Shown here piece after piece: positions 10,386 to 42,881 of a stretch of DNA of 64,000 bases. The stretch's first letter is position 1, and each line of letters starts with the position of its first letter. The stretch lies in IMG/VR virus record IMGVR_UViG_3300032236_001859, positions 152,044-216,043 of that record; one strand, given 5' to 3'. Under the pieces are notes generated by a model. It ran no database searches. It was not told where the DNA came from and worked only from the letters and a program-made list of their open reading frames with translations. The translations under genes and the position numbers were made by a program.

Positions 10386-11677
10386 GCCGGCTGGAGTTCG
10401 GGATGAGAGTGATCTGCAGGGGCATATCGTATGCGTGGCCCTGCACTGCGTGGTGCGCGTGGAGCCCGCGTAGGCGCTGGTGCTTCGTCTTCGTCAGACA
10501 TCGACTTGTACAACAAATAGCCAAGCCCGAGTACGGCGGCACCCCCCGCGCTGTACTTCAGAATCTTCACGGCCTCTGGGGATGTGACGAAATCAGTTAC
10601 CTTCTTGAAGGATTTGGAAATATCGTCGACCGACTTCGCAGTGTCTTTTACGCCGGAACCCAAGTTGGTTACCGCGTCGGATGCCTTGTCAGCAGAGCTG
10701 GTAACTTTAGACACTGAACTATCGATATTCTTCAAAGTGGACCCAGCGTCCTGAGTCAAACTCTGGACACCTCCGAGGGCACCAGTCAATGCCTTCATCG
10801 CCGGAGTGGTTTCATTGGCAGCATTAGCCACAGCACCCGCGCCCTGTTCAACTGACTTCGCAGCACCAGCAGCGGATTGCCCGACCTCGTCCACATTCTT
10901 ACGAAGAGACTTGACCCCCTCGGAGACATCCTGGCCGACCTGCTTAACTGTGCCAGTAGACGTATTGACTACATCCCGAACACCTTGATCAACTGCCGAA
11001 AGTAGACCTGGCTTTCCATCTTTGTCTTGTAGTTTCTCTTTTGTTGTCCCTGCGATGTCGTTCGCCTTGCCTAGTAAACCGGCACCATAACTTGCAGCCT
11101 CTACGCCTGCGGCAGCAGCACCTAACCCTAGTTTTTGCTTGACGACATCATTTATCCACGTGTCCTGGCGGGCACGTGATGCCAGAGGCGACAAGACTGC
11201 GTGGGCAAGCTCTGGGTCTGCAGAGGAAACAGTTTCAACCCTATTAGTGGTGGGGGAGTGAAAACTGAACTCATGTGCACCTGTCTGTGGGTTTAACTTC
11301 CACAGTGGAGATCTTGATAAATCCATTTTGCCCTCAGCGGCATCTCGGAGATGCCGTTGCGCCAACCCAAAATCCTTACCACTCATCCCATGGCGAGTTG
11401 ACTTGGTAGCCAGGGATCCCCCAAGGATCCCTGCTATTCCGGCTTCACTCCCGGCCCCGATTGGATCCTGCCCCGCAGCAGTAGCGCCTGCGTAGGTTGC
11501 ACCGGCTACAGGTAACCCCACTAACAGCGGCGCCGGGGTCCTCCCCACCAATGCACGTGCACCGGTAAGTGCAGGTGATACCCCTGATGACAGCGCATCC
11601 ATTGCTCCGATGAGCCCCCTGCGATCTGCGGCTACCTTTTTAGTCAGATAAAAAAGCATGATCTGAGCTGGACTCAT
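10382..11677 (-). CDS. Putative virion membrane-associated protein with amphipathic helical repeats
   Basis: 431 aa; KVAA at residue ~13-16; Gly/Ala zippers; ~130-aa 11-mer-like repeat region; C-terminal TM (AGGAAVLGLGYLLY). Confidence 0.6.
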   Translation of the reverse strand: MSPAQIMLFYLTKKVAADRRGLIGAMDALSSGVSPALTGARALVGRTPAPLLVGLPVAGATYAGATAAGQDPIGAGSEAGIAGILGGSLATKSTRHGMSGKDFGLAQRHLRDAAEGKMDLSRSPLWKLNPQTGAHEFSFHSPTTNRVETVSSADPELAHAVLSPLASRARQDTWINDVVKQKLGLGAAAAGVEAASYGAGLLGKANDIAGTTKEKLQDKDGKPGLLSAVDQGVRDVVNTSTGTVKQVGQDVSEGVKSLRKNVDEVGQSAAGAAKSVEQGAGAVANAANETTPAMKALTGALGGVQSLTQDAGSTLKNIDSSVSKVTSSADKASDAVTNLGSGVKDTAKSVDDISKSFKKVTDFVTSPEAVKILKYSAGGAAVLGLGYLLYKSMSDEDEAPAPTRAPRAPRSAGPRIRYAPADHSHPELQPA

Positions 11678-27183: not shown

Positions 27184-30100
27184 TCAGGCGTGCTGTAAGG
27201 TGCAGGCTCCACCGGCACATGCCATCTCGGGTTGCGCCCCCTTGGTACCATCGGTTTCCTCAACCATCAGGGAGTAATCGACATCGCGCCAGTTCCGGGA
27301 TAGACGTTCCCAGAGATGGAGATTGTTGACTTCCTTGAGGCAATACGTCATCCGCTTCAGAGCAGCGACACGATCTGCATCGGGGGTAGATGTGGTCAGC
27401 AACGCTGGGTACTGGAAGTAATTTGTGGCGAACTGTACGGCCCTGCGGACCCAATCCTTCTTGAGTTCGTGGACATGCTCGTAGGCCTCACGGATGGCAT
27501 CGGGTAGCGCGTTGGGATCCGCGGGATACGGAACTCCGTTGGCAAGAATCGAGGCTTCACCGAGCCCCATCACGGTATCGCATGCCAACCAGAGGTTGTT
27601 ACCGAAGGCGTGGAGCCCATCGACGATGAGACCAGATGCAAAGAAGGCACCGCGGCCATAGCGCTCCAGGATTTCACTCTCGGTACGGACCTCACAGAAC
27701 GGGGCCTGGGGATAATCGAGATCCCCTGAGGTCCCCAGGATACTGACTCCCGTGAAGGACTCCCGGTGCTCGTAGATGTAACGTGCGGCGTCTTCCTCTT
27801 GGTTCTGACGAATCGTGATCGTGTTGGAGACATTGTGGTGCAGCCAGGGCTTCACAGCACGCTCGGGCACACTGCCAGCTGCAACCCAGTTGTCCTGGGT
27901 GAGCTTGACGTACTCGAGCTGCTTGAGCCCATTGACCTCACGCCGCGTCAGGGCTTCATCGGAGGCCTCGATGCAGAACGTGATCACCGCGGTGTTCCCG
28001 TTGGGTTCCCACACCGAGCGTTCAACGGCATCGGGGTTGTGAACCTTGAAGTATTGGAAGGGGGCCTCGTTGACGTTGGCCTGGGCTCTGCGGAAGTACC
28101 GCTTGGCGTGTTGAGCATGGATCCCACTCGATGTCCCGAGAAGGCATGACGTTGATCCCGCGGGTTTAACACAGGTCGCCCGTGCCGTGGGCCGGATACC
28201 CAGCCGGGGTGCCAGATCAGCGTTGACATCGAGGATGAGCTTGGCGAGGTCACGCTGCCGCTGGGGATCAAAGGACTGCGAGGGGTTGTCCATCATCCCA
28301 GTCATGGAGACCCCGAGGAGGGCCTCACGTTTCGCGATACACTCGCTGACATTACCGAGGTAGTCGAACTTGGTATAGCCGGCCTGGAGAGTGCCCAGGA
28401 TCGCCGCTGCGGTGCACGCACGTCCCCAGTCCTTATCGGTACGGCAGGCCTTGGCGTTGACTTCACAGAGATTACAAAAGCTCCACCCTGAGATCTCTAC
28501 GTTTGCATATTCAACGACTTCTACGGAATGTTCCCCGTTGATCTCATCGAGATCTTTGTAGGAAATCGCTGGGTACATCCCGGTCTCCACGCAGTTCGAG
28601 ACACTATGACCTCCTGTCCAGTAAGTGTGACTCTCATTGTCAACTGTGATATCATACACCTCCATATCACCAAGCGAAGTAACTGATCGAATAGCATAGG
28701 TATCCTGCGTGCGCCCTGAAATCCGTATGTCGCATGCAGCTGATAAGCGAGATACCTTGCTAGAGTGGATAAACCCTATCAGTTTTGCGAACTTACAACG
28801 GTCGACGCTGATATTGATGTCGTAGCTTTCTTTGCACTCATACACCCCATTACTAAACTCGACGTCGTGCGCCCTGTTAGTAGTGAAATAGCTGCGAATA
28901 CCGAGAGATGACAACGCAGTCTGTACATCATCTCGCAAACCAGGGCTACACGTCTTCAGCGTAACTCTATTAGCAACGACACTTCCATTTGCAGAGTACA
29001 GCCCACGTAAAACAGAACACAGGATATCCTGCCCAGATTGTAAAAACCGCTGTGGGATCCTACGCGATGGGATGGTTGGCATGTCTTCTTGGGTGAGCAA
29101 CGAGAAGTCTTGAACTTTGAACAGCCTGGTGCTCCCACCGTAACCCTCCCTGGATACCCATGGCATACAGTTGAAAATCTCCTGATCGCCCGCACCTATG
29201 TTGAGGAGTAGACCTCCCCCAGCCTTGTGCCACGTGCCATCGCCAAGCAACAACCCAACCATAATGTTTGCATCGTTATGCACAGGGGCTTCGCCGACAT
29301 CCGCTGTAAGCACGTCTATAGATTCTGCCAACCCAACCTCGACCTTCTCCCCATGCTGCTCCACCCGATGATTAGCCGTACCTACAAATACACCTGCAGA
29401 CGTGCGGTATTCCGATACCGGCTTTATTCCAGTGCTCCATTTCCTCAAAACACGAGTCCAGCCCTCGCGGCTCCAAATCACGCTACCTACATCGATATCT
29501 GCAAAAGTGCGCAAACCATCGGGGGTAAGAACAGTAGCACAGGCGGGTTGACAGGGGTTCACCATGAGCTCGGAGCTATCCGACCACACGAACCCGGGCT
29601 CCCCGTACTGGCGGCGTGCCAGCATGAAGATGTCATGGAAGGCTTCCCAAGTAGTCTCACCCCGGATCAACATCGCCGAGTTATTAGAACGCGCCCGCTG
29701 GGGGTTGTCCTGCATCCAGTTCCCAGTCTTCGCGTTCATCATTTCGGGGTCATCAACACTGAACAAGCAAATCGTGGCGCTACGACGAACCCCACCGGCG
29801 AGGACGGCATCCGAGGCGTGCATGATGATGTCGTAGACATCGATGGGGCGGAGGTGGCAGTCTTCACCATGGCACCGGGTCAACGCGGTATCAAGGACCC
29901 CACGAATCTTTTCCAGGGATGCCGAGAGAGGCCCAGGCCCTGGAGCCTTGCCTGCACCCGTGCTCAGACTCGAGCCCTGGTTACGGATGCGCGAGTAATC
30001 AAAGCTGACATGGCTGCCGACATAATCGGAGAAGAACCCGGGGTGCTGGAAGGACACCTTGGCATCATTGCCTGGTGCGGTTTCTTCGGCGAACTCTTGC

Positions 30101-30606
30101 ATCCCGACACCCAGGCATCCATAGGAGGCCAGGAGAACACCGAGGGCATCAGCCCAGCCTTCAACACTGTCGGCAACCGTGAACACCTTGATCTGGTGTT
30201 TATCCACCGCGATTAACTTGGGCAGCTTGGCGACGTGGTGGCGTTGCACCGAGAACCCGGTGCCGCAACCACAGAGCAGAAGATATAGGCATTCCTGGAA
30301 GAACCGGGGGCGATCCGCATAGGATCCCGAACAATTGAACGCTCTGGCCTCTTTCCTCAAGATAGGGGAACCACCGAATTGAAGTGCTCTCTGGGAGCCC
30401 AGGACCAGGCCATCTTTCATGGCTTCCAGACAGAAACTCAACTCGGCTTCGATATCAAACCCTTTATATTTCGTGCGGTGCATTTCGATGACGCGTTCAA
30501 AACTCTCACTTGGTATTTCGCGTCGATTCAGTTCAGGTAAAAATCGTCCATAAGACGCCGCGAACTTGTATGCTGCTAGTGATTGCGTGGTCATATAACA
30601 CTCCAT
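27184..30606 (-). CDS. nrdJ: Class II (adenosylcobalamin-dependent) ribonucleotide reductase, monomeric RTPR type, intein-containing
   Basis: SQRALQFGG, FNCS, LLCGCGTGFS, GGVRRSA, NP[intein]CVE, CNL, TCVKPAGSTS..SGIH and C-terminal CAGGAC. Confidence 0.92.
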   Translation of the reverse strand: MECYMTTQSLAAYKFAASYGRFLPELNRREIPSESFERVIEMHRTKYKGFDIEAELSFCLEAMKDGLVLGSQRALQFGGSPILRKEARAFNCSGSYADRPRFFQECLYLLLCGCGTGFSVQRHHVAKLPKLIAVDKHQIKVFTVADSVEGWADALGVLLASYGCLGVGMQEFAEETAPGNDAKVSFQHPGFFSDYVGSHVSFDYSRIRNQGSSLSTGAGKAPGPGPLSASLEKIRGVLDTALTRCHGEDCHLRPIDVYDIIMHASDAVLAGGVRRSATICLFSVDDPEMMNAKTGNWMQDNPQRARSNNSAMLIRGETTWEAFHDIFMLARRQYGEPGFVWSDSSELMVNPCQPACATVLTPDGLRTFADIDVGSVIWSREGWTRVLRKWSTGIKPVSEYRTSAGVFVGTANHRVEQHGEKVEVGLAESIDVLTADVGEAPVHNDANIMVGLLLGDGTWHKAGGGLLLNIGAGDQEIFNCMPWVSREGYGGSTRLFKVQDFSLLTQEDMPTIPSRRIPQRFLQSGQDILCSVLRGLYSANGSVVANRVTLKTCSPGLRDDVQTALSSLGIRSYFTTNRAHDVEFSNGVYECKESYDINISVDRCKFAKLIGFIHSSKVSRLSAACDIRISGRTQDTYAIRSVTSLGDMEVYDITVDNESHTYWTGGHSVSNCVETGMYPAISYKDLDEINGEHSVEVVEYANVEISGWSFCNLCEVNAKACRTDKDWGRACTAAAILGTLQAGYTKFDYLGNVSECIAKREALLGVSMTGMMDNPSQSFDPQRQRDLAKLILDVNADLAPRLGIRPTARATCVKPAGSTSCLLGTSSGIHAQHAKRYFRRAQANVNEAPFQYFKVHNPDAVERSVWEPNGNTAVITFCIEASDEALTRREVNGLKQLEYVKLTQDNWVAAGSVPERAVKPWLHHNVSNTITIRQNQEEDAARYIYEHRESFTGVSILGTSGDLDYPQAPFCEVRTESEILERYGRGAFFASGLIVDGLHAFGNNLWLACDTVMGLGEASILANGVPYPADPNALPDAIREAYEHVHELKKDWVRRAVQFATNYFQYPALLTTSTPDADRVAALKRMTYCLKEVNNLHLWERLSRNWRDVDYSLMVEETDGTKGAQPEMACAGGACTLQHA
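28594..29553 (-). mobile_element. 320-aa intein with LAGLIDADG homing endonuclease domain
   Basis: Begins CQPACATVLTPDG, ends YWTGGHSVSN followed by C+1; LLLGDG and GLYSANG motifs; YDITV block F; visibly more AT-rich than the flanks. Confidence 0.9.
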
Positions 30607-31236: not shown

Positions 31237-31431
31237 TCAGAACCCTGACCCCGCAGCGGCATCCCTTGCCGCTGCCCAGGCCACGGCATCAAAGGTGACC
31301 AGGACATTTGGTTGTGAGGCAAATCTGACTACGACTTTGTCGGTGCCATACGGCATCCACATAATGGCTTCTCGCACGTTATACGTGGAACCACCGACAA
31401 CAGGGGTAAAGAAATTATCTGTGAAAGCCAT
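31237..31431 (-). CDS. 64-aa stand-alone copy of the repeated beta module
   Basis: YNVREAIMW....VVVRF...VTFDAVAWAAA; start overlaps the stop of the 1122-aa gene. Confidence 0.6.
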   Translation of the reverse strand: MAFTDNFFTPVVGGSTYNVREAIMWMPYGTDKVVVRFASQPNVLVTFDAVAWAAARDAAAGSGF

Positions 31432-34400
31432 TATGACCTCGACTTCGACGCCTGCATGGCGGTCTCAAAGGCGTTGAGATCAAACCCGACGTTGACATCT
31501 GCGGCATCGGCGAAGCGAACCAGCGCAGGGGTACTCCGGTTCCATGTCGCCACCCAATCCAAGTTATAGTACACGCTACCACCACCGGGATTCCACCAGG
31601 GCATCCCAGATGGCAGCGCGGCCAGGAAAGTTGCACGCGCAATACGAATAGGCGGATTCACTGCACACTGGGGGTCTTCCGCCATCGCAGAGGACGCCAT
31701 CCAGACATCAACATAACCCAGGGCGGGGTAGTCGACATAGCGCTGAACAAAGATAACATTGAGTGTGGTCTGCCCCACGATTAGATCTGGCAACGCCGCA
31801 GCGATCGCTGGGCTTCCAAGTAAAGTAGGGCTACTTGATCTCGAGAAATCCCATTGGGTCAAGAAAGCGCTGCGACTCAGCGTTATAGGCGAATATGGGC
31901 TTCCGAAGAAAATCGCAGTAATGGTTTGTGTGTCATCTTTGAACGAGACAACCCAACGGAGATCATAGACGGCACCACCACTGGTCTGGAGTTCGTGTGG
32001 GCTCCCAAAGATCACGTTGTGGTTGTCGCCTTTGTCCTTGATGCCACTACGCGCATACACCGGGCTACCCGTGCTTGCATCACACCAGGCCACACCGAGT
32101 GAAGAATTACCCTTGATATAACTACTCGAGCTCGCACCAGACCTACTTACCAGATTCCACACACTCGCAGGCTGGAGATCTACACCTTCAATCTTGATCT
32201 GCCCGCCCCGCAAGGTGGCCCCTGCGAGATGCAGCAGTGCCGCCGATGTCAGGGTGAGCGCACCGTAGGCGTCGAGAACCCCGGCATTGAGGTCCACACT
32301 GGATCCCGCAAGCGCCGTGAAGGCCCCCGTGGTCAAGACGACATCATTGTATAGATCGAGAATCGTGCCGGCGCCAGAAACCAGAATGGAAGGGAATGCA
32401 GCGGGGAGCCCGCCGCTGACTTGAAACTGCTGGCGGACCCCACCAGTGAAATCAACTCTGGGGACCCCATTGGAGACCACGGTGACGTTAGCCCCAATTA
32501 CGAGCTTCCCAGTGAACTTTGCTAGGGATACGCCTACACCAGTGTTGGGTGCAGCCGCGATGCCCCAGCGAGTTGTGCCCCCGGTACGCCCCAGGGTGAC
32601 ATCGCCATAAGTGATATCGACGACATCCGCGTTTCCGACTGGGTAATCAAATAAGTAATCGCTACCAGCTCCGGCGACATACGTGTACGTGAAACTGGAG
32701 ATATTGGCGACGACTCCTCCACGTGCCTGGATCTGAATGACTTTGTTGCCTGATGTCCGCTTGGCAATGAGACCTGCGATATTCACGGTGCCGGGACCAA
32801 CGAACTGACAGTCAAGGTTCGCTGCGGAACCCGTGGATTCAACGGTGAGTCCACCTGCTAAGTTGACGCTCCCATTAAACGTGAGTCTGCATAGATTTGT
32901 CCATATACCCTTGAGAGTCATGGGCGCCGTGAAGACGTGGCCAGAAGGCACGGAATAAAGCGTGTTTCCGCTGGGCCCCTCTCGGAACTCAATTGGGCAC
33001 GTGAACACAACTGCAGTGGGTGCCGGCAACGGAGTCGACTTCAGGGTGTCAAGGATCAATGTGGATGCCCCGGCTATCGTACTCGAATCACCCGATATTA
33101 ACGTGGGATAGCTCGAGCCTCCACCGAGTAATCGTAGATTACCTGAGGCCAGCGTGAGTGTGACATTGGTACCCAAGGTAATACTAAGAAGATTCGTACC
33201 GGGGCCTGCCACTGTGATGGTCATCAGCTTCTCGGTACCGCCCATATTTAACACTGTGGAGTAGTTACATACCAACCGAGATGGGATCTTTTGAGAATCC
33301 GTAGCACTGAAGACTACTGTGGCCCCCACACAATCCACAGTCAGGATACCACCCCAGCTATTACTGACATCGGTCGCAGTAAACTTGGAAAGATCAAACG
33401 TGTAGTTGTCTCTGCGTAGTGTGACGTTCTGACTGGCGAGATTCAGGGTCAACCCAGTTTCAACAACCGTAAGTGTGAATGCCCAGACGAGCGCAGAATC
33501 AACGCGGAGACCGAGAACCTTGGAGCCCAGGGTGAGGTCTCCGGTACCGGTAGGGGAATCGCCGCCGATGGCGAAGTAGTGGTTTGTGTTCAGACCGCTG
33601 GCCGTGAGCCCACCAGCAAACGTGTTGGCCCCGGTGACATGGAATCCATTGGCGGTAGCCAATGTGTTCGCAGTGGGCTGGGATACGCAAGACAGCCCTG
33701 CGGAGTACCCGATCTCGCTGCCAATGATGCCCGACAAGTTGACCCGGCATCCCGCACTGATCGACATGATTCTGAACGTGCGAGTCCCCGCACCATTGAG
33801 CAGAGTTGTCGCACCGGTGAAATTCACCGTGCTCTGACCATTGACGTAGAGGTCAACTGTACCCCCGACTTCAATGGCACCACTGAACGTGAAATTCGTA
33901 TTGACCCCAGCCGGCATCGAGAGCGTGGAGGTCGTGTTCCCGATACCCAGGGCCATATTGGTGGCAAAGGTTCGAGTGGTCCCCGCAGTGATATACCAGT
34001 TGAAATAGGAGCCCTCGTAGAGGGACATCTTTCCGGTTCCAAATGAATGTGTGGTCGTCGCCCCGGAATAACTCAGAGAGAGCTGGACCCCTGCTGCGAC
34101 TATCGTGTTCCGGTGAGCCGGGAACGTCGTCGAGCTCGAATGGGTGTAGGTACCACCGTTGACATAGATGTCGTAGTTTCCAGTGACACTGCCTGTCGTG
34201 GTCAAGAACCCCGAACTCGTATTATCGATCGTAAAGTTTGTCTTGAGACGTAGCGGCGCCGAGATCGTAACAGTGTTTGAACCCGAGACCTGGTAGTAGC
34301 GTGAGATCGAGAGGTTACCCCCATTCGATGTCGCCAGGGTCTTCCCACCACTGGAGTCACTGGTGATAGTCAGGATCGTGGTATCCGCGTAAAACGTGAA

Positions 34401-34799
34401 TACCTTGGTACCCGAGTTGGTGATATGAAGAGTGGTAATGACTTGTTCTGCGAAATTATAGGTCGCCGTGGATTCGATGACCCAGCGCCCCGTGGCACCA
34501 TTTAAGGTCATCTCGTTGGAGAGCGCCAGCGCGGTGACCCCTGAAGCCATGACAGCGAAATCAAATGTGGCCAGACTGAGGGTGCCCGTGTAGCCCGTGA
34601 ACACAGCGGTATTCACGGTGAGGTTCGCACTCAACGTGCACGCCGCGTTGTGACCAGTACCACTGCCATCAAAACGGATGTCGTCGGCGGCTAGAGACCC
34701 CGCGGCAGCCGCAGTGGTCCCCCCGATGTCCGTGGTGTAGTTCTGACGCTTATTCGCGTCGGAGTCACCGACTTTGTTGTGCCAGTAAAGAGTGGCCAT
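31431..34799 (-). CDS. 1122-aa beta-helix virion/tail spike protein with three C-terminal repeat modules
   Basis: MATLYW start, T/G/S-rich parallel beta-helix composition, three ~55-aa modules at the end. Confidence 0.65.
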   Translation of the reverse strand: MATLYWHNKVGDSDANKRQNYTTDIGGTTAAAAGSLAADDIRFDGSGTGHNAACTLSANLTVNTAVFTGYTGTLSLATFDFAVMASGVTALALSNEMTLNGATGRWVIESTATYNFAEQVITTLHITNSGTKVFTFYADTTILTITSDSSGGKTLATSNGGNLSISRYYQVSGSNTVTISAPLRLKTNFTIDNTSSGFLTTTGSVTGNYDIYVNGGTYTHSSSTTFPAHRNTIVAAGVQLSLSYSGATTTHSFGTGKMSLYEGSYFNWYITAGTTRTFATNMALGIGNTTSTLSMPAGVNTNFTFSGAIEVGGTVDLYVNGQSTVNFTGATTLLNGAGTRTFRIMSISAGCRVNLSGIIGSEIGYSAGLSCVSQPTANTLATANGFHVTGANTFAGGLTASGLNTNHYFAIGGDSPTGTGDLTLGSKVLGLRVDSALVWAFTLTVVETGLTLNLASQNVTLRRDNYTFDLSKFTATDVSNSWGGILTVDCVGATVVFSATDSQKIPSRLVCNYSTVLNMGGTEKLMTITVAGPGTNLLSITLGTNVTLTLASGNLRLLGGGSSYPTLISGDSSTIAGASTLILDTLKSTPLPAPTAVVFTCPIEFREGPSGNTLYSVPSGHVFTAPMTLKGIWTNLCRLTFNGSVNLAGGLTVESTGSAANLDCQFVGPGTVNIAGLIAKRTSGNKVIQIQARGGVVANISSFTYTYVAGAGSDYLFDYPVGNADVVDITYGDVTLGRTGGTTRWGIAAAPNTGVGVSLAKFTGKLVIGANVTVVSNGVPRVDFTGGVRQQFQVSGGLPAAFPSILVSGAGTILDLYNDVVLTTGAFTALAGSSVDLNAGVLDAYGALTLTSAALLHLAGATLRGGQIKIEGVDLQPASVWNLVSRSGASSSSYIKGNSSLGVAWCDASTGSPVYARSGIKDKGDNHNVIFGSPHELQTSGGAVYDLRWVVSFKDDTQTITAIFFGSPYSPITLSRSAFLTQWDFSRSSSPTLLGSPAIAAALPDLIVGQTTLNVIFVQRYVDYPALGYVDVWMASSAMAEDPQCAVNPPIRIARATFLAALPSGMPWWNPGGGSVYYNLDWVATWNRSTPALVRFADAADVNVGFDLNAFETAMQASKSRS

Positions 34800-35955: not shown

Positions 35956-37455
35956 CTAGAATTGTTTCATGCGTGGATTCCTGGCGTGGCAAGCCTTGCA
36001 CACCAGCGGCAACCCTTGGAGGCCGATGGCATCGTAGCCCCCTCTGGCAACCCTCGTCTTATTCACTCGCCAATTCGACAGGATGTCTGCCGGGGTATCC
36101 CTAAGGACATTCCCGGCCTGTATGGTGTTCTTGAAGTCCGCACAGCAATGAATCACGGTGCCATCGTTTCGGACGATTAACTCGTGGTCCTGCCGATGAC
36201 AGATCCCGAAGTCACCTGGACCCACGTTATCGGGGAGATCCTTGTGCTCGCGCCTGAGATCCAACCCAGACTCCCGGATCACGATGTGCGAATAGGTTTT
36301 CCTTAACTCCCGTGCCGCAGCGGCGTCCTCATGTGAGTACGCGCTCCAAACGACCTCATCGAAGTCGGCTAGATAACTTGCCTTCTCTGGATCCCTGGGT
36401 ATCAGCTTACCATTGGTCCACAAGTTGAACTTAACTGGTAGCATGCGTTGCTTAATTTTACCAATGGTCTCCAGTACCTTGTCTAATTCTAACAGGGGTT
36501 CGTTATAGAAGTGAAAGGCGATGTGCCCCCGGAACCCCTGGGTGACCATGTAGGCAGCGAACTCCACAATGCTCTCAGGGGTCAACGCAGTGGCCTGGGG
36601 GTCACGTGGGATCTCATTGATGGGACACCGGGAATGAACCCCTGCGAGATTGCAAGTAGTCCCGACCTCAAAGCACAGGTATCTGATCTCCGCGGGGCTC
36701 CAGAGCTGCCAGCGCCGCCCATTGATCGGTGGCTCGATGACCACTGGTGGCGGAACAGGAAGGAGGTCAACACGGGGGTCATGTTTGATCAAGGGTTCCT
36801 GGGGATGCCACCACATGACCTCTGACCACGTACGCCCAATCGTGGATCTCAGGGTCCCCTGCGCCGCGATGTGCTTGCGGACCCCATAGAACCTATGGGT
36901 ACGGTGGAATCCCCTGAGAACTTGATCTGGACTCCTCGCATTCCGCGTCATCTCGATGTAGATCTCAGCCAACTTGGACACCTTGTAGAGGATGCAATGC
37001 GTTCTCACGGCACCACGGACCACGACGAGGTCGTCAGTGAGCGCTGCAGGTGGTACCTGGTGCTCACCACCACAGTAGAGCCCATAGGCGTCTGAGGGAA
37101 CCCTGGGGAGTACATCTGACAGTACGGTGAGGAAATCCGGGGAGAACACACAGTCATCCTCAATGAGCAGCGCCCACTTGGCATCAGACATCATCATGGA
37201 CTCATACGCCATGAGGTGGCTGACATAGCACCCGAAGTCCCCTGGGCGATTGAACCATTCAGGCGGCAACTTCGGCCGCATCAAGGATTGGTCAAAACCG
37301 TAGAAGGGGGGAAGCCAGTCAGATGGGATGACTGCCTTGTCGGCTTCACGACGGAAAACCTCGAGCCGATCTGGGGTACGCCGCAGCGTCAGGACGCCTC
37401 GCCAACCCACCGCTTGTGTCAAGTAATCCAGGGAACGCTCTGGTGCAGACATCAC
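35956..37455 (-). CDS. GT25-like glycosyltransferase fused to radical-SAM/SPASM-like domain
   Basis: FGCYVSHL and LIEDD (GT25); CNLAGVHSRCP, FYNEPLL, LWTNG (radical-SAM-like); C..LIVRNDG.VIHCC..GNV...CKAC (SPASM). Confidence 0.75.
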   Translation of the reverse strand: MMSAPERSLDYLTQAVGWRGVLTLRRTPDRLEVFRREADKAVIPSDWLPPFYGFDQSLMRPKLPPEWFNRPGDFGCYVSHLMAYESMMMSDAKWALLIEDDCVFSPDFLTVLSDVLPRVPSDAYGLYCGGEHQVPPAALTDDLVVVRGAVRTHCILYKVSKLAEIYIEMTRNARSPDQVLRGFHRTHRFYGVRKHIAAQGTLRSTIGRTWSEVMWWHPQEPLIKHDPRVDLLPVPPPVVIEPPINGRRWQLWSPAEIRYLCFEVGTTCNLAGVHSRCPINEIPRDPQATALTPESIVEFAAYMVTQGFRGHIAFHFYNEPLLELDKVLETIGKIKQRMLPVKFNLWTNGKLIPRDPEKASYLADFDEVVWSAYSHEDAAAARELRKTYSHIVIRESGLDLRREHKDLPDNVGPGDFGICHRQDHELIVRNDGTVIHCCADFKNTIQAGNVLRDTPADILSNWRVNKTRVARGGYDAIGLQGLPLVCKACHARNPRMKQF

Positions 37456-37459
37456 GGGG

Positions 37460-39889
37460 TTACCTCGTCATGAAAGTGTAGGGGCCGACACCATCCCGGA
37501 AGTCCCAGGCCGAGCCGACCAGTGTCATCGTTGGCGGTGTCTTGGGGTCTCCTGCCTCGCGAGCCTTCGCCGCGGGATCAAAGTACCACCAGGGGAGTTC
37601 GACGAAATCTTTGGCGCGGATGTTTCCTGAGAGCACGGAGTCCAGGGCTAGATCAACGGTCTCCTTGGCTTTGATCCTGGCCTTGCAGGAGTCAGCCCAG
37701 GCCTCGATGGTAACTGAGCCATAGGCTGCACCGACAACCCTGGATCGAACCTTACCATCGAAGTCCTTGAATCCAAAGGCACCAGCACCAATGGCGCAGA
37801 GTGCACTGGGGTCACGTATGACTTCGACGTCGGCATCGATGCAGAGGCCCCCGACGCCCATGCGGAGTGCTGCTGGCTTCGCGATCTCGTTGAGGACATC
37901 GTGTGGCAACTCGGCGACAGTGACGCCTAGATCGTCTTCATAAAAACTGGTGACCATCGTGGCGGTCTCCGGGGTGTCCTGCCACAGGTTGACATCCCAG
38001 CCCAGGGACTCCAGCAACTCGATGTTCTTGGCAACCGTGGCGGCGACTTCACCCTCGATCTTGGTGCCGATGGCCATGATGTGGATAATCTTGGGGATCG
38101 TGGCCTCATCTGCAGTCGGGGGATCCAGGGGCTCTAAATCGAAGCCCTCGAGATCGGAGAACCCCCCGGCCTGTTTGAGCAGCCTGAGGTACAAGCGTTC
38201 CTGTGGGGTATAGGTGCCCGTGGCGGGTTCCCCCCAGTACCGAATACGCTTGGGTTCAATCTTGGGTGCGATGTGGGTGTCGATGCCTGTGGTCACAATG
38301 GTATCAGCCCAAGTGCGAGCCCATCGAATGGCCTCGGCTCCAGTGGATAGCCCCCAGGTCTCGTGGACCACCGGGGGTTGCAGGCGACGCTTGGCGTAGG
38401 CGGGATCCCAGACATCTGGCTTGTTCGCACTGATGTGGCGCAGCCGTGAGAGCACCTCGGCGTAGCGGGCACCCTGCGCGGGGTTCTCGAGCACCCTGGG
38501 TTGGATGAGGACGACTCTCCAGGGCTTCAGCATGGCCAGACCGATCTCGAGGTCTTCCAGGGCGCGGGGATGCTGAGGGTTCAGTACCCAGTAGTCGGTG
38601 CGGTCCCCGACGGGGTAGCCATCGAGGCGTGGGAAGTTGATTCGGATGACGACGTCATCGGATCGCATGCCGTCATCCCGCCAGCCCTCACCTGCATTGG
38701 CAGTGGATCCATTGCCAACAATGAATGCACGTCGGCTACCATCATGCTTGTCGGTGTCTATCTTGAGGGGGCGTGTGGTCGCCGGGATATTCCAGGCCCC
38801 ATTACGAGGCGGGATCCCCGCGGCGGCCAGCGCTTTGTCCTCGAGTTCGACGAGGCGTTCAGTGGACTTCCCAGCGGGGGCGACTGCGAGCTCAGCGGTA
38901 TAGGCGTCCCAGGCCGCCTTGACCTCGGCGATACCGAGACCAGCGGAGTAGCCCCAGGCGAGATCCCGCAAAGAATCTGTTAGTATAGGGGGTGCTATTC
39001 GAGGTTGTGTGGGCTTCGCGGGCTCCTTGAAGTGGCCATCATAGAGCCCAGCCGAGGACTCCCTGGGGTTCACCTTGGAGTCATTGGTGGCCTGGGCCCG
39101 GGCATCGATGAAGGACTTATAGGGGAACGCGGTGAGCCCAGAGATCTGGGTGGTATTGAATACCTCGAATCCATGGTGAAGGAACTCGACCTGGAGCTGG
39201 GTGAACAATCCATTGAGGTACTCGAAGAGTGTGTTGTTCTTGTCGGCGACTGTGGCATCGACGACCTGATCATGGTTGTACGCCTTCTTGGGATCCATCT
39301 TGAAGTCAGCACCGATGAGGTAGACCCTCTTGAACCCCAGGATGTAGAGGATCCGCATCGCGGCGACCATGGTGCTCCGACCACCCCTGCGGTGATCATC
39401 GCCTTCCTGGCCCCAGTTGATGGTATCCTCATGTAACCAGGTCTTGGCATCAAACTTGTCATTGCGCCGGATGAACCAGGTGTTCGGGCAATCCTTGGGG
39501 GTCCGCACGGGGTGGTCCCGTAACGGCATGTCCTGATAGGCCAGAGGATAGAACTTCTGGATACCGGGATCCAGCCAGATCGAGTTCAGGAAGCGATGGG
39601 GTTCATCGAGGCCACACCAGAGCTGGGGACGCCAGCCCTGGGCAGCATTGTTGACCGCCATCGTGATGATCCCAGGCGTCGTTGAGAGCGCTTTGAGATC
39701 AATGGCACCTGCGCTGGGGCCGCCACAGACCAAGAATGCAGTGGCGCCAGCGTAGGCGTGTCCCAACCAGGCGTTCTCCATCTGTGATGTAAAGAACACG
39801 GCGGGCTGGGAACGCAGGATGCGCCCAGCCCGGGCTTCAGTTGCCGTGATGATGTTGAAGGCATCGTGACGCCCGGGGTGGGTGGTCAT
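37460..39889 (-). CDS. Triple-domain glycosyltransferase: DUF115/Maf-like + GT29 sialyltransferase-like + GT32 (DxD)
   Basis: FLVCGGPS..TMAVNNA..LGFKRVYLIGAD; AFIVGNG..DVVIRIN...VGDRTD (sialylmotif L-like) and LSTG..TTGID (sialylmotif S-like); IPKIIH..GGLCIDADV. Confidence 0.75.
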   Translation of the reverse strand: MTTHPGRHDAFNIITATEARAGRILRSQPAVFFTSQMENAWLGHAYAGATAFLVCGGPSAGAIDLKALSTTPGIITMAVNNAAQGWRPQLWCGLDEPHRFLNSIWLDPGIQKFYPLAYQDMPLRDHPVRTPKDCPNTWFIRRNDKFDAKTWLHEDTINWGQEGDDHRRGGRSTMVAAMRILYILGFKRVYLIGADFKMDPKKAYNHDQVVDATVADKNNTLFEYLNGLFTQLQVEFLHHGFEVFNTTQISGLTAFPYKSFIDARAQATNDSKVNPRESSAGLYDGHFKEPAKPTQPRIAPPILTDSLRDLAWGYSAGLGIAEVKAAWDAYTAELAVAPAGKSTERLVELEDKALAAAGIPPRNGAWNIPATTRPLKIDTDKHDGSRRAFIVGNGSTANAGEGWRDDGMRSDDVVIRINFPRLDGYPVGDRTDYWVLNPQHPRALEDLEIGLAMLKPWRVVLIQPRVLENPAQGARYAEVLSRLRHISANKPDVWDPAYAKRRLQPPVVHETWGLSTGAEAIRWARTWADTIVTTGIDTHIAPKIEPKRIRYWGEPATGTYTPQERLYLRLLKQAGGFSDLEGFDLEPLDPPTADEATIPKIIHIMAIGTKIEGEVAATVAKNIELLESLGWDVNLWQDTPETATMVTSFYEDDLGVTVAELPHDVLNEIAKPAALRMGVGGLCIDADVEVIRDPSALCAIGAGAFGFKDFDGKVRSRVVGAAYGSVTIEAWADSCKARIKAKETVDLALDSVLSGNIRAKDFVELPWWYFDPAAKAREAGDPKTPPTMTLVGSAWDFRDGVGPYTFMTR

Positions 39890-39891
39890 GC

Positions 39892-40203
39892 TTAACTCCT
39901 GCGAGTCTTTTTCTTCTTGGCGTGCTCACGACGAGCCCGCGCCTTGATGATACCGCTGCGCTCCCTGAGGAGCTTGAGCTGACGGTTCTGCTCAGCGGTA
40001 CGTGCGGCGACAATGCGTTGCCGGCGCAGTGCCCTGGCCTTCTCCAGGGCTTCATCGCGGCTGCCGGGGTGATCCCCTGTGGCCTTCTCATAGGCCATGC
40101 GTTCCTCGGGGGTCAGGATCCCAGGTGTGGCCTCGGGCTTCTCAGGGGTACCGACCACAGATGCCGTCGCGGCATCAATGACTGCTTTGAGATCAGTGCT
40201 CAT
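39892..40203 (-). CDS. Small hypothetical protein with basic C-terminus
   Basis: 103 aa, ATGA coupling. Confidence 0.55.
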   Translation of the reverse strand: MSTDLKAVIDAATASVVGTPEKPEATPGILTPEERMAYEKATGDHPGSRDEALEKARALRRQRIVAARTAEQNRQLKLLRERSGIIKARARREHAKKKKTRRS

Positions 40204-40799
40204 GCCTTCCCTTTCTTCTTCGCCTTGGACTTGGACTTGGACTTCACAGTCTCGACGCTGGAGACTGTCTTGACCTTGGCCTTCAAGGTGCCGCCAGGTG
40301 TGGCCTTTTTCTTCAACACCTTTTTACCCAACTCGGCCTCGCGTGCCTGGAGAGCTGCGATCAACTGGCGTGGGGCAGCAAGAAAGTTGGGGTCATTTAG
40401 ACTCGTAAATGTGTACCCAGCCTCTTTCAGCTTCTCAGATGCAACACGGAATACACGGAAATCCCCCACAACCGCAACATCGATGTCACGTGACAGGCCA
40501 TCACCTGCCTTAACGGTGCGCCACGCTGAAGCCGGGAGAGTACGCGCGCGACGAATGATGGGGTCCCCTTCTTTCACCTCGGGTGCACCGCGTGTACCAA
40601 CTACCACCGGACCCTCACCAGGGATCAGGTACAGAAGGCGAGACTTGGCCTTCTGGAAGACATCCCCAAGACTGTTGGGTGCATTCATATGGGTGATCTC
40701 AAGATTGGCTATCCCCATGACGATGCTGAATAGAGCGTCGATCTCTTTCAGGCGCTCGAAGTTGGCATTGGGGTTGCAGGATTTGGAACATTTCGACAT
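40200..40799 (-). CDS. Hypothetical protein with Lys-rich tail
   Basis: Start re-called at MSKCSK after an AGGAG RBS. Confidence 0.6.
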   Translation of the reverse strand: MSKCSKSCNPNANFERLKEIDALFSIVMGIANLEITHMNAPNSLGDVFQKAKSRLLYLIPGEGPVVVGTRGAPEVKEGDPIIRRARTLPASAWRTVKAGDGLSRDIDVAVVGDFRVFRVASEKLKEAGYTFTSLNDPNFLAAPRQLIAALQAREAELGKKVLKKKATPGGTLKAKVKTVSSVETVKSKSKSKAKKKGKA

Positions 40800-40867
40800 A
40801 TAGTCTCCTCTGGGCGTTAGCCCATGTGGGTGGGTTGACTCACAGTAAACCATGACTCTCAGCGGTG

Positions 40868-41131
40868 TCAAGTCGGATGGGTGTCTGGGATGTCAGCGAT
40901 GGAGGCCTGAGTCCGCGTGATACCGCCAGTGGCCACAACAAACAAGTTCTGGACATATTCAGTGGATGCGCGCTCCTTGAACTCCTGTGGGGTGATCCCT
41001 GAGGTCAACGCGATCTGCAAGATGGTGCTTCGCAATGCAGCGGCGGCCTGAAGCAGCTCAGTCGAGTTGTTGATCACGTTCTGAATCTCTACGGGGAGCT
41101 TGGGTGCCGCGGGTAGTGGTGTGTAATCCAT
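40868..41131 (-). CDS. Small hypothetical protein
   Basis: Start re-called at MDYTPL after an AAGGA RBS. Confidence 0.5.
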   Translation of the reverse strand: MDYTPLPAAPKLPVEIQNVINNSTELLQAAAALRSTILQIALTSGITPQEFKERASTEYVQNLFVVATGGITRTQASIADIPDTHPT

Positions 41132-41141
41132 GGTGGTATCC

Positions 41142-42881
41142 TTAATCGATGGGTTTGAGGTTGAAGCGCTGGAGGACACCCCCAATGCTTGTGGTACGTG
41201 GAACTCTAAGAGCCCAGTACCCGGCGAGAAGGCGCTCCCTGTACCGCAGGGGCTGCACGGCGAGTGGGCACCGCCCCAAGGCCACCACGGGCACCCCAAT
41301 CATGGCGGCTTCGACAAGGGAGGTCGAATTGATGCCGACGACGACTTCACTGATACGCGCGGCTTCATAGAAGTCTTTGATGGTGTCGCGGTTCTCGATG
41401 GTGGCCCGTGCGGACTTCCAGGGTCTCTGGGATCCCGACTTGGGGTGGGGGCGGACCACGATGTCATGGCTGGGATACATCGCGGAGACATGTTCAATAA
41501 ACTCGCCCATGTTGCGGTAAGGGCAATGATACAAGATCTGGGAGTCGTTCTCGATCTGGAGGGGTACGAGGACGCGTCCCTTCTTGGGTTCCAGAGGATA
41601 CTTGGTACGGAGTTCGACAACACCCTCACGGTACGCCTTGAGGTCGGCGTCACCAACCCAGCCCAGTGGTCGCATCAGCATGGAGTCCCCAGCGAAGCCA
41701 TCGAGGTCAACGAGGAATGTTGTCGCCTGGGGGGCCACACCCCACTCGAAGAAGGCATAGGGGATCTTCATGGCCTCACAGAGCGCCTTGGCGTTGCGAC
41801 CATTGTGCTGGGCCCCATTCCAGATGACCACAAACGAGGCCCGCTTGAGATCACCGGCGACCTTGAAGAACTCGGTGTCGATGCCGATGAAGGCGTAGGG
41901 GCGCCCCAGGGACTCCGCCCAGCGCTTCACGAAGCCCTGACACTCACTCCCATTCCACCCGATATAAACAATGGCGCCGTCGTCGGCACGCCTGCCGGGG
42001 GCCTCCTCGGGCTCACAGTCGCCCTGGGGGACCTCGTGGAGGGTTTCCTTGCCCGGCCAGGGATCCATGGGGGCCAAGACGGCATCGGAGGCGCGGACCT
42101 CGTAGCCCAGGGTGGCCCGGGCATACGCCGAGGTGAGTTCGCGCGCAATCCGCTCAGTCCACTTCGAGGCATCGACATCAGCCTGAGTATCCCGGGCATG
42201 GAGAACGGCGATCCCGGCGTGGTGGAGGTAGAACCGCTGCGGTGCCATCCATGGACTCAGGGGTTCCTCGGTGATCCCCGTGGTCTGCCTGCCGAGTTCC
42301 CTGTTGAGATGATTGACCTGGAAGGGGAACTCGGCGAGAACACGCTGGGCAAAGATGACATCATGGTTGCGCATGACGCCCTGGGGATACGTGATATTGG
42401 CATCGACGATGGGGGCCCTGCGGAAGAATGCGGCGTTATACCTGAGAGGAAACTTGCCCTCTAGGGATTGCCGGGTTACCGTGTAGTCACCCCAGGACAC
42501 CGCGTTGCGAGCCACGGCTTCATTAGCCTTGAGTTCATGAGTCCACAGCACGATGTCGGGGTTCTTCTCGGCCTCCTGTTCGAGGACGGCGACACGGACT
42601 TCTTCGGAGAAATCCCTGTCACCGTGCACCAAGATGAAGTCAGCACTTGAGCGTGCGATGAGGAAGTTGAGGGCGGCGCCGGCACCAATACGGTGAGAAC
42701 TCGTGAAGACTTCAATTCGGGAGTCGATCCCGCGCTCCTCCTCGATGAGCTCAGTGGTCTGCGCTGTGGCGGCATCACTGAACACCAAGACGCGGTTGAC
42801 CCCGCGAATCTTGAGTATGTTCTGGAGAGTGGCCTCGATGTGGGGGTTGTCATGTGTAACCAAGACGATGTCAGTGGTCAT
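41142..42881 (-). CDS. GT2-like domain fused to KpsS/KpsC-like (capsule synthesis) domain
   Basis: IVLVTHD..VLVFSDAAT..GAGAALNFLI..ADFILVHGD (GT2 fold); LVPLQIENDSQI, VVRPHP, INSTSLVEAAMIGVPVVALG (KpsS-like). Confidence 0.75.
   Translation of the reverse strand: MTTDIVLVTHDNPHIEATLQNILKIRGVNRVLVFSDAATAQTTELIEEERGIDSRIEVFTSSHRIGAGAALNFLIARSSADFILVHGDRDFSEEVRVAVLEQEAEKNPDIVLWTHELKANEAVARNAVSWGDYTVTRQSLEGKFPLRYNAAFFRRAPIVDANITYPQGVMRNHDVIFAQRVLAEFPFQVNHLNRELGRQTTGITEEPLSPWMAPQRFYLHHAGIAVLHARDTQADVDASKWTERIARELTSAYARATLGYEVRASDAVLAPMDPWPGKETLHEVPQGDCEPEEAPGRRADDGAIVYIGWNGSECQGFVKRWAESLGRPYAFIGIDTEFFKVAGDLKRASFVVIWNGAQHNGRNAKALCEAMKIPYAFFEWGVAPQATTFLVDLDGFAGDSMLMRPLGWVGDADLKAYREGVVELRTKYPLEPKKGRVLVPLQIENDSQILYHCPYRNMGEFIEHVSAMYPSHDIVVRPHPKSGSQRPWKSARATIENRDTIKDFYEAARISEVVVGINSTSLVEAAMIGVPVVALGRCPLAVQPLRYRERLLAGYWALRVPRTTSIGGVLQRFNLKPID

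Follow-up and report, generated by a model that had tools for sequence, protein, structure and literature searches.

A GT25 glycosyltransferase gene of a jumbo phage is fused to a predicted BtrN-like radical-SAM domain with histidine in place of the middle cluster cysteine

A gene of a 216-kb phage (IMG/VR record IMGVR_UViG_3300032236_001859) was found to join a family 25 glycosyltransferase (GT25) to a predicted BtrN-like radical-SAM/twitch domain, in which the central cysteine of the expected CX3CX2C cluster motif is replaced by a histidine. The same replacement is present in all of the 187 unique homologues identified, and it therefore marks an uncharacterised family of putative enzymes rather than a decayed gene. 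BtrN-type radical-SAM domains and GT25 enzymes are both already known; what distinguishes this lineage is the strictly conserved Cys-His-Cys site, and no literature or curated model describing the family was found.

Structure of the fusion gene

The analyzed window comprises 64,000 nucleotides (positions 152,044 to 216,043 of the record). Positions 35956-37455 constitute a single ORF on the minus strand, a strand that had not been stated in the original prediction. Features of the encoded protein are summarized in Table 1. Translation starts at GTG 37455 or ATG 37452, with a GAGG Shine-Dalgarno sequence about 10 nt upstream, and the start lies only 5 nt after the stop of the upstream gene. The sequence TCNLAGVHSRCP corresponds to residues 267-278 (window 36622-36657, previously given as ~36620-36657), while FYNEPLL corresponds to residues 316-322 (window 36490-36510).

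Table 1. Coordinates of the distinguished features within the analyzed window
Coordinates	Strand	Residues	Feature
35956..37455	-	1-499	Whole gene, GT25/His-variant radical-SAM-like fusion protein of 499 aa; TAG stop at 35956-35958
36805..37443	-	~5-217	GT25 (GT-A fold) glycosyltransferase domain
37153..37161	-	99-101	E99-D100-D101, DXD-type motif inside L-I-E-D-D-C-V-F
36721..36801	-	219-245	Pro-rich, disordered interdomain linker
35959..36708	-	250-499	BtrN-like radical-SAM/twitch-fold domain ("CHC" domain)
36667..36669	-	263	E263 on the predicted first strand, invariant in both the His-variant and the canonical clade
36622..36654	-	268-278	C268-N-L-A-G-V-H274-S-R-C277-P278, C-x5-H-x2-C-P motif in place of CX3CX2C; H274 codon cat at 36634-36636
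36496..36513	-	315-320	H315-F-Y-N-E-P320, at the position of the "GGE" SAM-binding motif (BtrN H-F-Y-G-E-P)
36409..36417	-	347-349	T347-N348-G349, conserved in both clades and in BtrN (Y-T-N-G)
36253..36261	-	399-401	D399-L-R401; R401 invariant in both clades and aligned with an Arg of BtrN (S-N-R); D399 specific to the His-variant clade
36199..36201	-	419	C419, aligned with the first of the four C-terminal Cys of BtrN (its auxiliary-cluster ligands)
36142..36147	-	437-438	C437, aligned with the second auxiliary-cluster Cys of BtrN, and C438, an extra Cys (148/151 in the His-variant clade, 10/41 in the canonical clade)
35989..36000	-	486-489	C486-K-A-C489, CxxC pair completing the four-Cys auxiliary-cluster set
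37460..39889	-		Upstream gene in the same strand run (context): 809-aa putative glycosyltransferase with weak MptE-like and sialyltransferase-like matches, all below curated cut-offs
41142..42881	-		579-aa GT2 + Capsule_synth protein, part of the same glycan-gene island (context)

The N-terminal domain matched the Pfam GT25 model (PF01755) with 34.1 bits against a cut-off of 24 (E 3.1e-8), although only residues 72-118 were covered; in a search of the whole genome the score was 35.7 bits. Two close homologues, P0002 and P0003, share 43-49% identity with this domain and also hit GT25. The AF2 model of the domain has a pLDDT mostly above 90, and a Foldseek search with it retrieved mimivirus R655 (E 1.7e-9), human COLGALT1 (E 4.9e-9) and bacterial β-1,4-galactosyltransferases (the bacterial LOS enzymes of this family), in agreement with a GT-A fold, although identity to the solved members is only about 15-17%. 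The E-D-D motif aligns with that of R655 and with that of a GT25 encoded on the related viral contig L002. In the full-length model the linker has a pLDDT below 50 (model residues 218-244) and the pTM is 0.59, so no fixed orientation between the domains is given.

The C-terminal domain was modelled by AF2 with a pLDDT of 92.2 and a pTM of 0.89. Its predicted partial (β/α) TIM barrel was most similar to BtrN in a Foldseek search of PDB (4m7t, E 1.2e-11, TM 0.63/0.67), followed by CteB, SkfB, anSME, EpeE, MoaA, DesII and SpeY. BtrN was also the top hit by sequence and among Swiss-Prot models, and it was the only PDB sequence retrieved with the family profile (E 1.8e-22, full length, over profile positions 5-235). 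In contrast, no PF04055 hit was obtained at E ≤ 1, and the best NCBIfam hit was TIGR04317 at E 0.024 (13.8 bits against a cut-off of 380). The Pfam SPASM model (PF13186) matched residues 419-489 above its gathering score (26.0 bits against 21.5, E 1.1e-5). However, only five cysteines (C419, C437, C438, C486 and C489) lie in residues 400-499, so the set is not the seven-Cys SPASM set able to bind two auxiliary clusters, and the earlier description of an intact SPASM-type Cys set has to be corrected. C419, C437, C486 and C489 are invariant and align with the four C-terminal cysteines of BtrN, whose single auxiliary cluster is ligated by four Cys (PMC9012708), i.e. they form a twitch-type set.

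The possibility that the fusion or the motif results from an assembly or frameshift error, or from chance, was also considered. It could be suggested by the public gene call for this protein (P0001, 418 aa), which starts at M82 and truncates the GT25 domain. However, the reading frame is continuous, homology covers both halves (P0002 and P0003 match residues 5-235, while the standalone homologue P0004 matches residues 255-495), and an independent fusion of GT25 with the CHC domain exists in P0072, the only other representative in which this combination was seen. The genome is a complete record with terminal repeats, and the motif is shared by 187 sequences. This explanation is thus refuted.

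Conservation of the Cys-His-Cys site

A word-indexed protein search with the whole protein found only the protein itself, and the homologues were recovered by an exhaustive search. A tblastn search of deposited phage genomes with the protein, and with P0013, a typical family member, found no relatives of the C-terminal domain. The family is therefore absent from that collection at this sensitivity, although it is common in IMG/VR.

Conservation of C-N-L-x3-H-x2-C among homologues, named in advance as the test of the original prediction, came out strongly positive, and the random decay of the motif that would have argued against it was not observed. C268, H274, C277 and P278 are invariant in 151 of 151 aligned homologues sharing about 30% identity, and E-x4-C-(x5, rarely x3)-H-(x2/x3)-C-P is present in 187 of 187 unique sequences, which is far beyond chance. 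The observation underlying the original prediction is thus confirmed. H-x2-C has the same spacing as the canonical C-x2-C, and two members read C-x3-H-x2-C, i.e. the full canonical spacing with His at the middle-Cys position. The three-Cys motif that defines the radical-SAM superfamily is absent from the domain. C261 was considered as a third Cys ligand, but it is not conserved (S or I in most members), and no third conserved Cys is nearby. C438 was rejected by inference as a ligand of the N-terminal cluster, since it is adjacent to an auxiliary-cluster ligand, the two clusters are about 16 Å apart in BtrN, and 10 of 41 canonical relatives also have Cys at this position.

The nearest sequence relatives outside the family (E 1e-30 to 1e-18 against the family profile) form a sister clade from Bdellovibrionota, Streptomyces, Polyangiaceae, Nitrospina and others (loci L047-L084), which keeps CX3CX2C within E-I-E-I-N-x-x-C-N-x-x-C-x-Y-C-P-N-S. 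The two clades separate cleanly on a tree (support 1.0, branch length 1.65), which indicates a single origin of the variant. H315, Y317, N318, E319, P320, T347, N348, G349, R401 and all four auxiliary Cys are conserved equally in both clades. The segments Y-N-E-P, T-N-G, T-x-Y (T-x-Y/H) and L-D-x-R, which lie at the regions equated with the SAM-binding motifs of radical-SAM enzymes, match the sister clade and BtrN, but the aromatic residue before the third Cys, which packs on the SAM adenine in radical-SAM enzymes, is Y or F in 41/41 sister sequences and is lost in the His-variant clade, where it is mostly K, R, A or E. The Y-N-E-P segment, previously regarded as an anomaly in place of GGEPLL, is not tied to the histidine: the sister sequences recovered also read F-Y-N-E-P, although the pattern used to find them required N or C at that position, and BtrN itself has F-Y-G-E-P. 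Several polar residues (D399, R421, E425, D429 and H435) are invariant only in the His-variant clade, which indicates that the pocket is remodelled. The analyzed protein and its two nearest relatives differ from the family consensus at D429 (R) and P422 (Q).

BtrN (2-deoxy-scyllo-inosamine dehydrogenase of Niallia circulans; PDB 4M7T/4M7S) shares with the family a compact size of about 250 aa, E on the first strand, C-N at the first Cys, C-P at the last Cys, H-F/Y-Y-x-E-P-L-L, T-N-G, an Arg at the S-N-R position and four auxiliary-cluster Cys with similar spacing. It differs in having C16-x3-C20-x2-C23 (PMC9012708), whereas the His-variant domain has two residues inserted before the histidine, lacks the aromatic residue before the last Cys, and carries C438 and other clade-specific residues. 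Identity is only about 20%, and BtrN belongs to an aminoglycoside cluster, while the His-variant domain occurs with glycosyltransferases in phages. The longer loop has a precedent in HcgA/HmdB of [Fe]-hydrogenase cofactor biosynthesis, whose CX5CX2C motif binds a [4Fe-4S] cluster and supports SAM cleavage (PMC10100467; PMC4389238). However, HcgA has Cys at the middle position and belongs to the HydE/BioB-like branch rather than the twitch/SPASM branch, and no homology beyond the superfamily was found.

Association with glycosyltransferases

Most family members are standalone proteins of 230-260 aa. There are roughly 1500 representatives, and a member from a cultured host is the 603-aa protein of Anaerotruncus sp. 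G3(2012) (locus L035). Among 51 long homologues the domain is fused to GT2, GT7C, GT25, GT92, DUF5672 and a sulfotransferase, i.e. repeatedly and in both orders to at least five glycosyltransferase families (about 35 with the domain N-terminal and 15 with it C-terminal or internal). In two related viral contigs, L001 and L002, it lies next to a separate GT25 gene. MptE-like proteins also flank the homologue in L002, while the upstream protein in L001 is unrelated to the 809-aa neighbour in the analyzed phage. Neighbours of the sister clade include DegT-type sugar aminotransferases (7/65) and GT1 enzymes (8/65), which corresponds to the BtrN logic of ketone then amine, and not GT2, GT25 or GT92. 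Ten of 126 ORFs neighbouring the His-variant genes encode canonical radical-SAM enzymes, so true radical chemistry in these clusters could be supplied by other proteins. A role of these enzymes as obligate partners was nevertheless rejected, since they belong to unrelated subfamilies (maturase-like SPASM, B12-binding and MiaB-like) and the analyzed phage encodes none.

Possible function of the His-variant domain

The original prediction proposed either a His-ligated [4Fe-4S] radical enzyme modifying the transferred sugar or a rewired Fe-S module, and this interpretation is supported in part: conservation of the motif and the link to sugar chemistry, including the relationship to BtrN, which oxidises an aminocyclitol, both speak for it. 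We tentatively favour a two-domain glycan-tailoring enzyme, in which the GT25 domain would transfer a hexose from a nucleotide sugar and the C-terminal domain descends from BtrN-type radical-SAM twitch dehydrogenases. A site-differentiated [4Fe-4S] cluster held by C268, H274 and C277 would bind and reductively cleave SAM, and the 5′-deoxyadenosyl radical would abstract a hydrogen from a carbinol carbon of the sugar handled by the fused or neighbouring transferase. The substrate radical would then either pass an electron to the auxiliary cluster (C419, C437, C486 and C489), giving a keto sugar as in BtrN, or be quenched from the opposite face by C438, giving an epimer as in NeoN and YydG/EpeE. 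The latter radical-SAM epimerases have a SPASM/twitch architecture with a catalytic Cys whose thiyl radical is thought to be quenched by the nearby auxiliary cluster (PMC5682303); they carry canonical CX3CX2C motifs, and the equivalence of C438 to their donor Cys is suggested only by its position next to C437. The analysis established the domain architecture, the predicted fold, homology to BtrN, invariance of the C/H/C/P and auxiliary-Cys positions, the single origin of the variant and its repeated coupling to glycosyltransferases. Transferase activity, SAM binding and cleavage, ligation of Fe by His, the substrate and the reaction outcome are inferred, the ligation from sequence conservation alone.

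A rewired Fe-S or metal module that no longer uses SAM remains a serious, though somewhat less favoured, possibility. In this view the auxiliary cluster is kept, while the C268/H274/C277 site binds either a fully ligated cluster, with D399 or E263 as the fourth ligand (D399 could in this way block SAM), or a mononuclear Fe or Zn, and the former SAM pocket binds something else, e.g. the nucleotide of a sugar nucleotide. The domain would then carry out non-radical redox or Lewis-acid chemistry, or electron transfer, on the glycan substrate. The absence of the three-Cys motif, the lost aromatic residue, the new invariant residues and the lack of radical-SAM profile hits above noise are consistent with this view. 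Radical-SAM-like proteins without the motif do exist, as NCBIfam curates a "pseudo-SAM/SPASM" family, TIGR04347, but the analyzed protein does not hit this model at E ≤ 1 and represents a different lineage. A radical-SAM enzyme with a His ligand on the SAM-binding cluster has not, to our knowledge, been described and did not turn up in the literature searches, and searches on CX5HX2C motifs, His-ligated radical-SAM or SPASM proteins in phages, BtrN with phages and glycosyltransferases, and pseudo-radical-SAM proteins found nothing on this family. On the other hand, conservation of the residues at the SAM-motif positions as strong as in the sister clade is hard to explain if SAM and radical chemistry had been abandoned, His sits exactly at the middle-Cys spacing, and this phage has no canonical radical-SAM gene that could act as a partner.

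It seems unlikely that the domain is a catalytically dead pseudoenzyme, kept only as a structural, carbohydrate-binding or regulatory appendage of glycosyltransferases. The canonical motif is lost and the domain is always found together with other enzymes, but about 30 positions, including the C/H/C triad and many polar residues of the pocket, are invariant or nearly so at about 30% identity, a level of constraint typical of catalytic sites, and most members are standalone proteins.

It is possible, though less likely than not, that the family is the first natural class of radical-SAM-type enzymes whose SAM-activating [4Fe-4S] cluster is held by two cysteines and one histidine. Such a class would have hundreds of members, be enriched in phages, be missed by PF04055-based mining and be dedicated to radical tailoring of sugars alongside glycosyltransferases. 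If it does not cleave SAM, it would be a radical-SAM scaffold caught after a complete, stably selected change of cofactor chemistry that kept its auxiliary cluster.

The radical-SAM superfamily is defined and mined by its three-Cys motif, and current annotations ("SPASM domain-containing protein" or "hypothetical") as well as Pfam, NCBIfam and PHROGs models do not capture this family, whose standalone members are small (about 240 aa) and have a solved, well-studied relative in BtrN. A large, strictly conserved lineage with Cys-His-Cys at that site either widens the coordination chemistry that can support SAM-based radical generation, or documents how a radical-SAM barrel is converted to another metallo-chemistry. 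A His ligand would change the potential of the cluster, its proton coupling and possibly its oxygen sensitivity. The family also points to unexplored radical sugar tailoring in phage glycan islands; in the analyzed phage, whose virion proteins include a Thr/Ser-rich 1122-aa protein encoded at 31431-34799, the island (35956-42881) holds three putative glycosyltransferase genes among the structural genes, which bears on virion or host-surface glycosylation.

A two-domain protein encoded among phage structural genes

Sequence analysis revealed a single 499-aa open reading frame on the minus strand, which starts 5 nt after the stop codon of the gene encoding the upstream 809-aa protein and is preceded by a GAGG ribosome-binding site. 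The window is the last 64 kb of a complete 216,043-bp virus record with direct terminal repeats. It carries a portal-like gene, tail-fibre-like genes and a ribonucleotide reductase gene, and every long, homology-supported ORF lies on the minus strand. A Pfam search of the protein identified GT25 and SPASM domains, both above the cut-off, but no Radical_SAM hit. Features of the gene and of other genes of the window are summarized in the table. The original prediction, that the CxxxCxxC motif is here replaced by a C-x5-H-x2-C motif in a GT25 fusion protein, was correct as an observation.

Features of the GT25/His-variant fusion gene and of other genes of the window
Feature	Window position	Strand	Residues	Details
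Whole gene	35956-37455	-	499 aa	start GTG 37455 or ATG 37452
Stop codon	35956-35958	-		TAG
GT25 (Pfam)			72-118	E 3.1e-8, above cut-off
DXD-position motif			99-101	E99-D100-D101
Start of the public gene call (P0001)	37212	-	M82	418 aa, inside the GT25 domain
Disordered Pro-rich linker			218-244 (model residues)	
T-C-N-L-A-G-V-H-S-R-C-P peptide	36622-36657	-	267-278	contains C268, H274 and C277
F-Y-N-E-P-L-L			316-322	
SPASM (Pfam)			419-489	E 1.1e-5, above cut-off
Upstream protein	37460-39889	-	809 aa	sub-threshold matches only: MptE-like (res 157-197), GT29 sialyltransferase (res 379-439), phage alpha-2,3-sialyltransferase PHROG
GT2 + Capsule_synth (KpsC/KpsS-like) protein	41142-42881	-	579 aa	
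Thr/Ser/Gly/Ala-rich protein	31431-34799	-	1122 aa	no Pfam or PHROG hit
Ribonucleotide reductase	27184-30606	-	1140 aa	phrog_367, E 5.8e-84, three matched stretches; LAGLIDADG domain at res 531-611
NUDIX + HAD / PNK-3'-phosphatase-like protein	11674-13761	-	695 aa	

An AF2 model of the whole protein (pLDDT 87.9) shows two well-folded domains separated by the linker, but with a pTM of 0.59 it gives no fixed orientation between them. The N-terminal domain matches mimivirus R655 (E 1.7e-9), human collagen galactosyltransferase COLGALT1 (E 4.9e-9) and bacterial beta-1,4-galactosyltransferases. The public gene call for this protein cuts this domain. However, homologues P0002 and P0003 align from residues 5-9 onward, so the long ORF is the real gene.

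The 809-aa protein may be a multi-domain glycosyltransferase, although all its matches are weak. The GT2 + Capsule_synth protein is encoded 3.7 kb from the fusion gene, and together the three genes form a glycan-gene island among the structural genes of a jumbo phage. The Thr/Ser/Gly/Ala-rich protein, encoded downstream of the glycosyltransferase genes, may be a fibre and a candidate target of glycosylation, but this is speculation. Elsewhere in the window, the LAGLIDADG domain within the ribonucleotide reductase looks like an intein with a homing endonuclease.

Relationship of the C-terminal domain to BtrN and conservation of the His motif

The C-terminal domain, modelled alone with 108 homologues, reached a pLDDT of 92.2 and a pTM of 0.89. 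BtrN was its best solved match in a single-sequence search (E 0.0015), the only match of the family profile (E 1.8e-22, full length), and the top Foldseek hit both against the PDB (E 1.2e-11, TM 0.63/0.67) and against Swiss-Prot models. The next fold hits are the SPASM/twitch radical-SAM enzymes CteB, SkfB, anSME, EpeE, MoaA, DesII and SpeY. In the alignments, C268 and C277 are placed on the first and third cluster Cys of BtrN, whose radical-SAM cluster is bound by C16/C20/C23 (PMC9012708), while C419, C437, C486 and C489 fall on the four C-terminal Cys that ligate its auxiliary cluster. The roles of other residues of the BtrN active site rest on alignment. The original prediction had described an intact SPASM-type Cys set, but only five C-terminal Cys are present, so this is a one-cluster twitch domain and not a seven-Cys SPASM domain.

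An exhaustive HMMER search of 1.84 billion representatives gave 1509 hits at E <= 1e-3 and 310 at E <= 1e-10. Of the best 150 of the 1509, which were those inspected, 134 match the C-terminal domain, and all full-length ones read F-E-[IVL]-x3-C-N-L-x3-H-x2-C-P. Across 151 aligned sequences sharing about 30% identity, E263, C268, H274, C277, P278, F308, P320, R401, C419, C437 and C486 are invariant, E319, D399 and C489 are invariant but for one sequence each, and about 20 more positions are nearly invariant. C261 of the query is not conserved. The motif is also carried by all 36 further members recovered in a second search. A catalytically dead pseudoenzyme, which we consider unlikely, fits poorly with this depth of conservation, and an artefact is excluded.

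Over 187 unique sequences, the spacing is C-x5-H-x2-C in about 161, C-x5-H-x3-C in about 24 and C-x3-H-x2-C in two (family members P0093 and P0096), and none lacks the motif. The last form is the canonical spacing with His at the middle-Cys position, and H-x2-C equals the canonical C-x2-C throughout. His is therefore the positional replacement of the middle Cys, and the two extra residues lie between the first Cys and the His.

Scans of IMG/VR and of one genome per prokaryotic species recovered 45 His-variant loci, originating from viral contigs and from Clostridia, Planctomycetota, Acidobacteriota, Dehalococcoidia, Synergistaceae and Parcubacteria. One of them (L035, NZ_KE159680.1, locus ORF 5977-7785) encodes a 603-aa member in a cultured isolate, Anaerotruncus sp. 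G3(2012). The same scans recovered 41 more distant loci, from Bdellovibrionota, Streptomyces, Polyangiaceae, Nitrospina and others, that read E-I-E-I-N-x-x-C-N-x-x-C-x-Y-C-P-N-S. This canonical sister clade sets the polarity. In a FastTree phylogeny the two sets split cleanly (support 1.0, branch length 1.65 against a median of 0.29).

Both clades share E263, C-N, C-P, H315, Y317, N318, E319, P320, T347, N348, G349, R401, G432, D440, G448, N449 and all four auxiliary Cys. Y-N-E-P, which the original prediction had listed as a departure from GGEP, is therefore not linked to the His change, with the caveat that the scan pattern required N or C at that position. Features specific to the His-variant clade are H274, loss of the Y/F before the last Cys (now mostly K, R, A or E), D399, R421, E425, D429, H435, C438 (148/151), W346 and W441. 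The query and its two closest relatives (homologue P0004 and the gene of viral contig L002) have R at position 429 and Q at 422.

Several of these features favour the main rival reading, a rewired Fe-S or metal module that does not use SAM, which remains possible though less favoured than a radical enzyme. They are the missing third Cys, the lost aromatic residue and the new invariant polar residues, of which D399 could cap the fourth Fe. The existence of curated "pseudo-SAM/SPASM" proteins (TIGR04347) points the same way.

Association with glycosyltransferase genes

Of 51 long homologues, 43 hit SPASM and only one hits PF04055. The extra domains are Glyco_transf_7C (11), GT2 families (10+7+3), GT25 (2), GT92, DUF5672, a sulfotransferase and TPR. 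The His-variant domain is N-terminal in about 35 and C-terminal or internal in about 15, and the fusions therefore arose repeatedly. The best homologue of the C-terminal domain, the standalone P0004 (46% identity), is followed by a separate GT25 gene and a methyltransferase gene. In L002, a related 220-kb viral contig, the standalone gene abuts a GT25 gene, and MptE-like proteins are encoded nearby.

Among 126 mechanically called ORFs neighbouring His-variant genes, the commonest families are Radical_SAM (10), terminase large subunit (7), GT2 and GT92, SPASM, portal, carbamoyltransferase, methyltransferases and sulfotransferases. The canonical radical-SAM neighbours are heterogeneous, and this phage has none; they are co-tailoring enzymes, not obligate partners. 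In small viral contigs (IMG/VR loci L003-L032) the His-variant genes often sit beside the packaging and head module, the 126 ORFs including, besides the large terminase genes, those for portal (3), small terminase (3) and prohead protease (2).

Neighbours of the canonical sister clade, likewise called mechanically, include DegT/DnrJ/EryC1 aminotransferases (7/65) and GT1 enzymes (8/65). This is the logic of BtrN, in which a radical dehydrogenase makes a ketone that is then transaminated. The clade (genome loci L047-L084) is common in predatory Bdellovibrionota/Bacteriovoracaceae, where it is sometimes present in tandem copies (L061, L067) and also lies next to further radical-SAM/SPASM genes, and it may represent an uncharacterised amino-sugar pathway.

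Inferred mechanism and relation to the radical-SAM superfamily

The analysis establishes a BtrN-derived fold (as modelled), an intact four-Cys auxiliary site, a strictly conserved C/H/C triad at the radical-SAM cluster position, retention of residues at the positions of the SAM motifs and recurrent coupling to glycosyltransferases. What follows from these is inferred, including ligation by His, SAM cleavage and the reaction itself. As the favoured though tentative reading, we hypothesize that a [4Fe-4S] cluster held by C268, H274 and C277 would leave a free Fe for SAM, and that the 5'-deoxyadenosyl radical would abstract a hydrogen from a sugar carbinol carbon. The resulting radical would then be either oxidised through the auxiliary cluster to a keto sugar or quenched by C438 to give an epimer. 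Cys hydrogen donors next to an auxiliary cluster are known in YydG/EpeE and NeoN (PMC5682303), and the five-then-two spacing has a precedent in HcgA/HmdB, whose CX5CX2C motif binds a [4Fe-4S] cluster and cleaves SAM (PMC10100467; PMC4389238). The original interpretation, that the protein is either a His-ligated radical enzyme modifying the transferred sugar or a rewired Fe-S module, is supported in part.

NCBIfam and PHROGs contain no model for this domain, and the only name given by a source is "SPASM domain-containing protein". Full-text literature searches found nothing on a C-x5-H-x2-C motif or on this family, although the open-access collection searched is incomplete and prior notice elsewhere cannot be excluded. 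The domain descends from BtrN-type twitch radical-SAM enzymes and is inferred to work like them, but it differs in having His in place of the middle cluster Cys. It lacks two defining features of the superfamily as currently drawn, i.e. the three-Cys motif and the PF04055 match.
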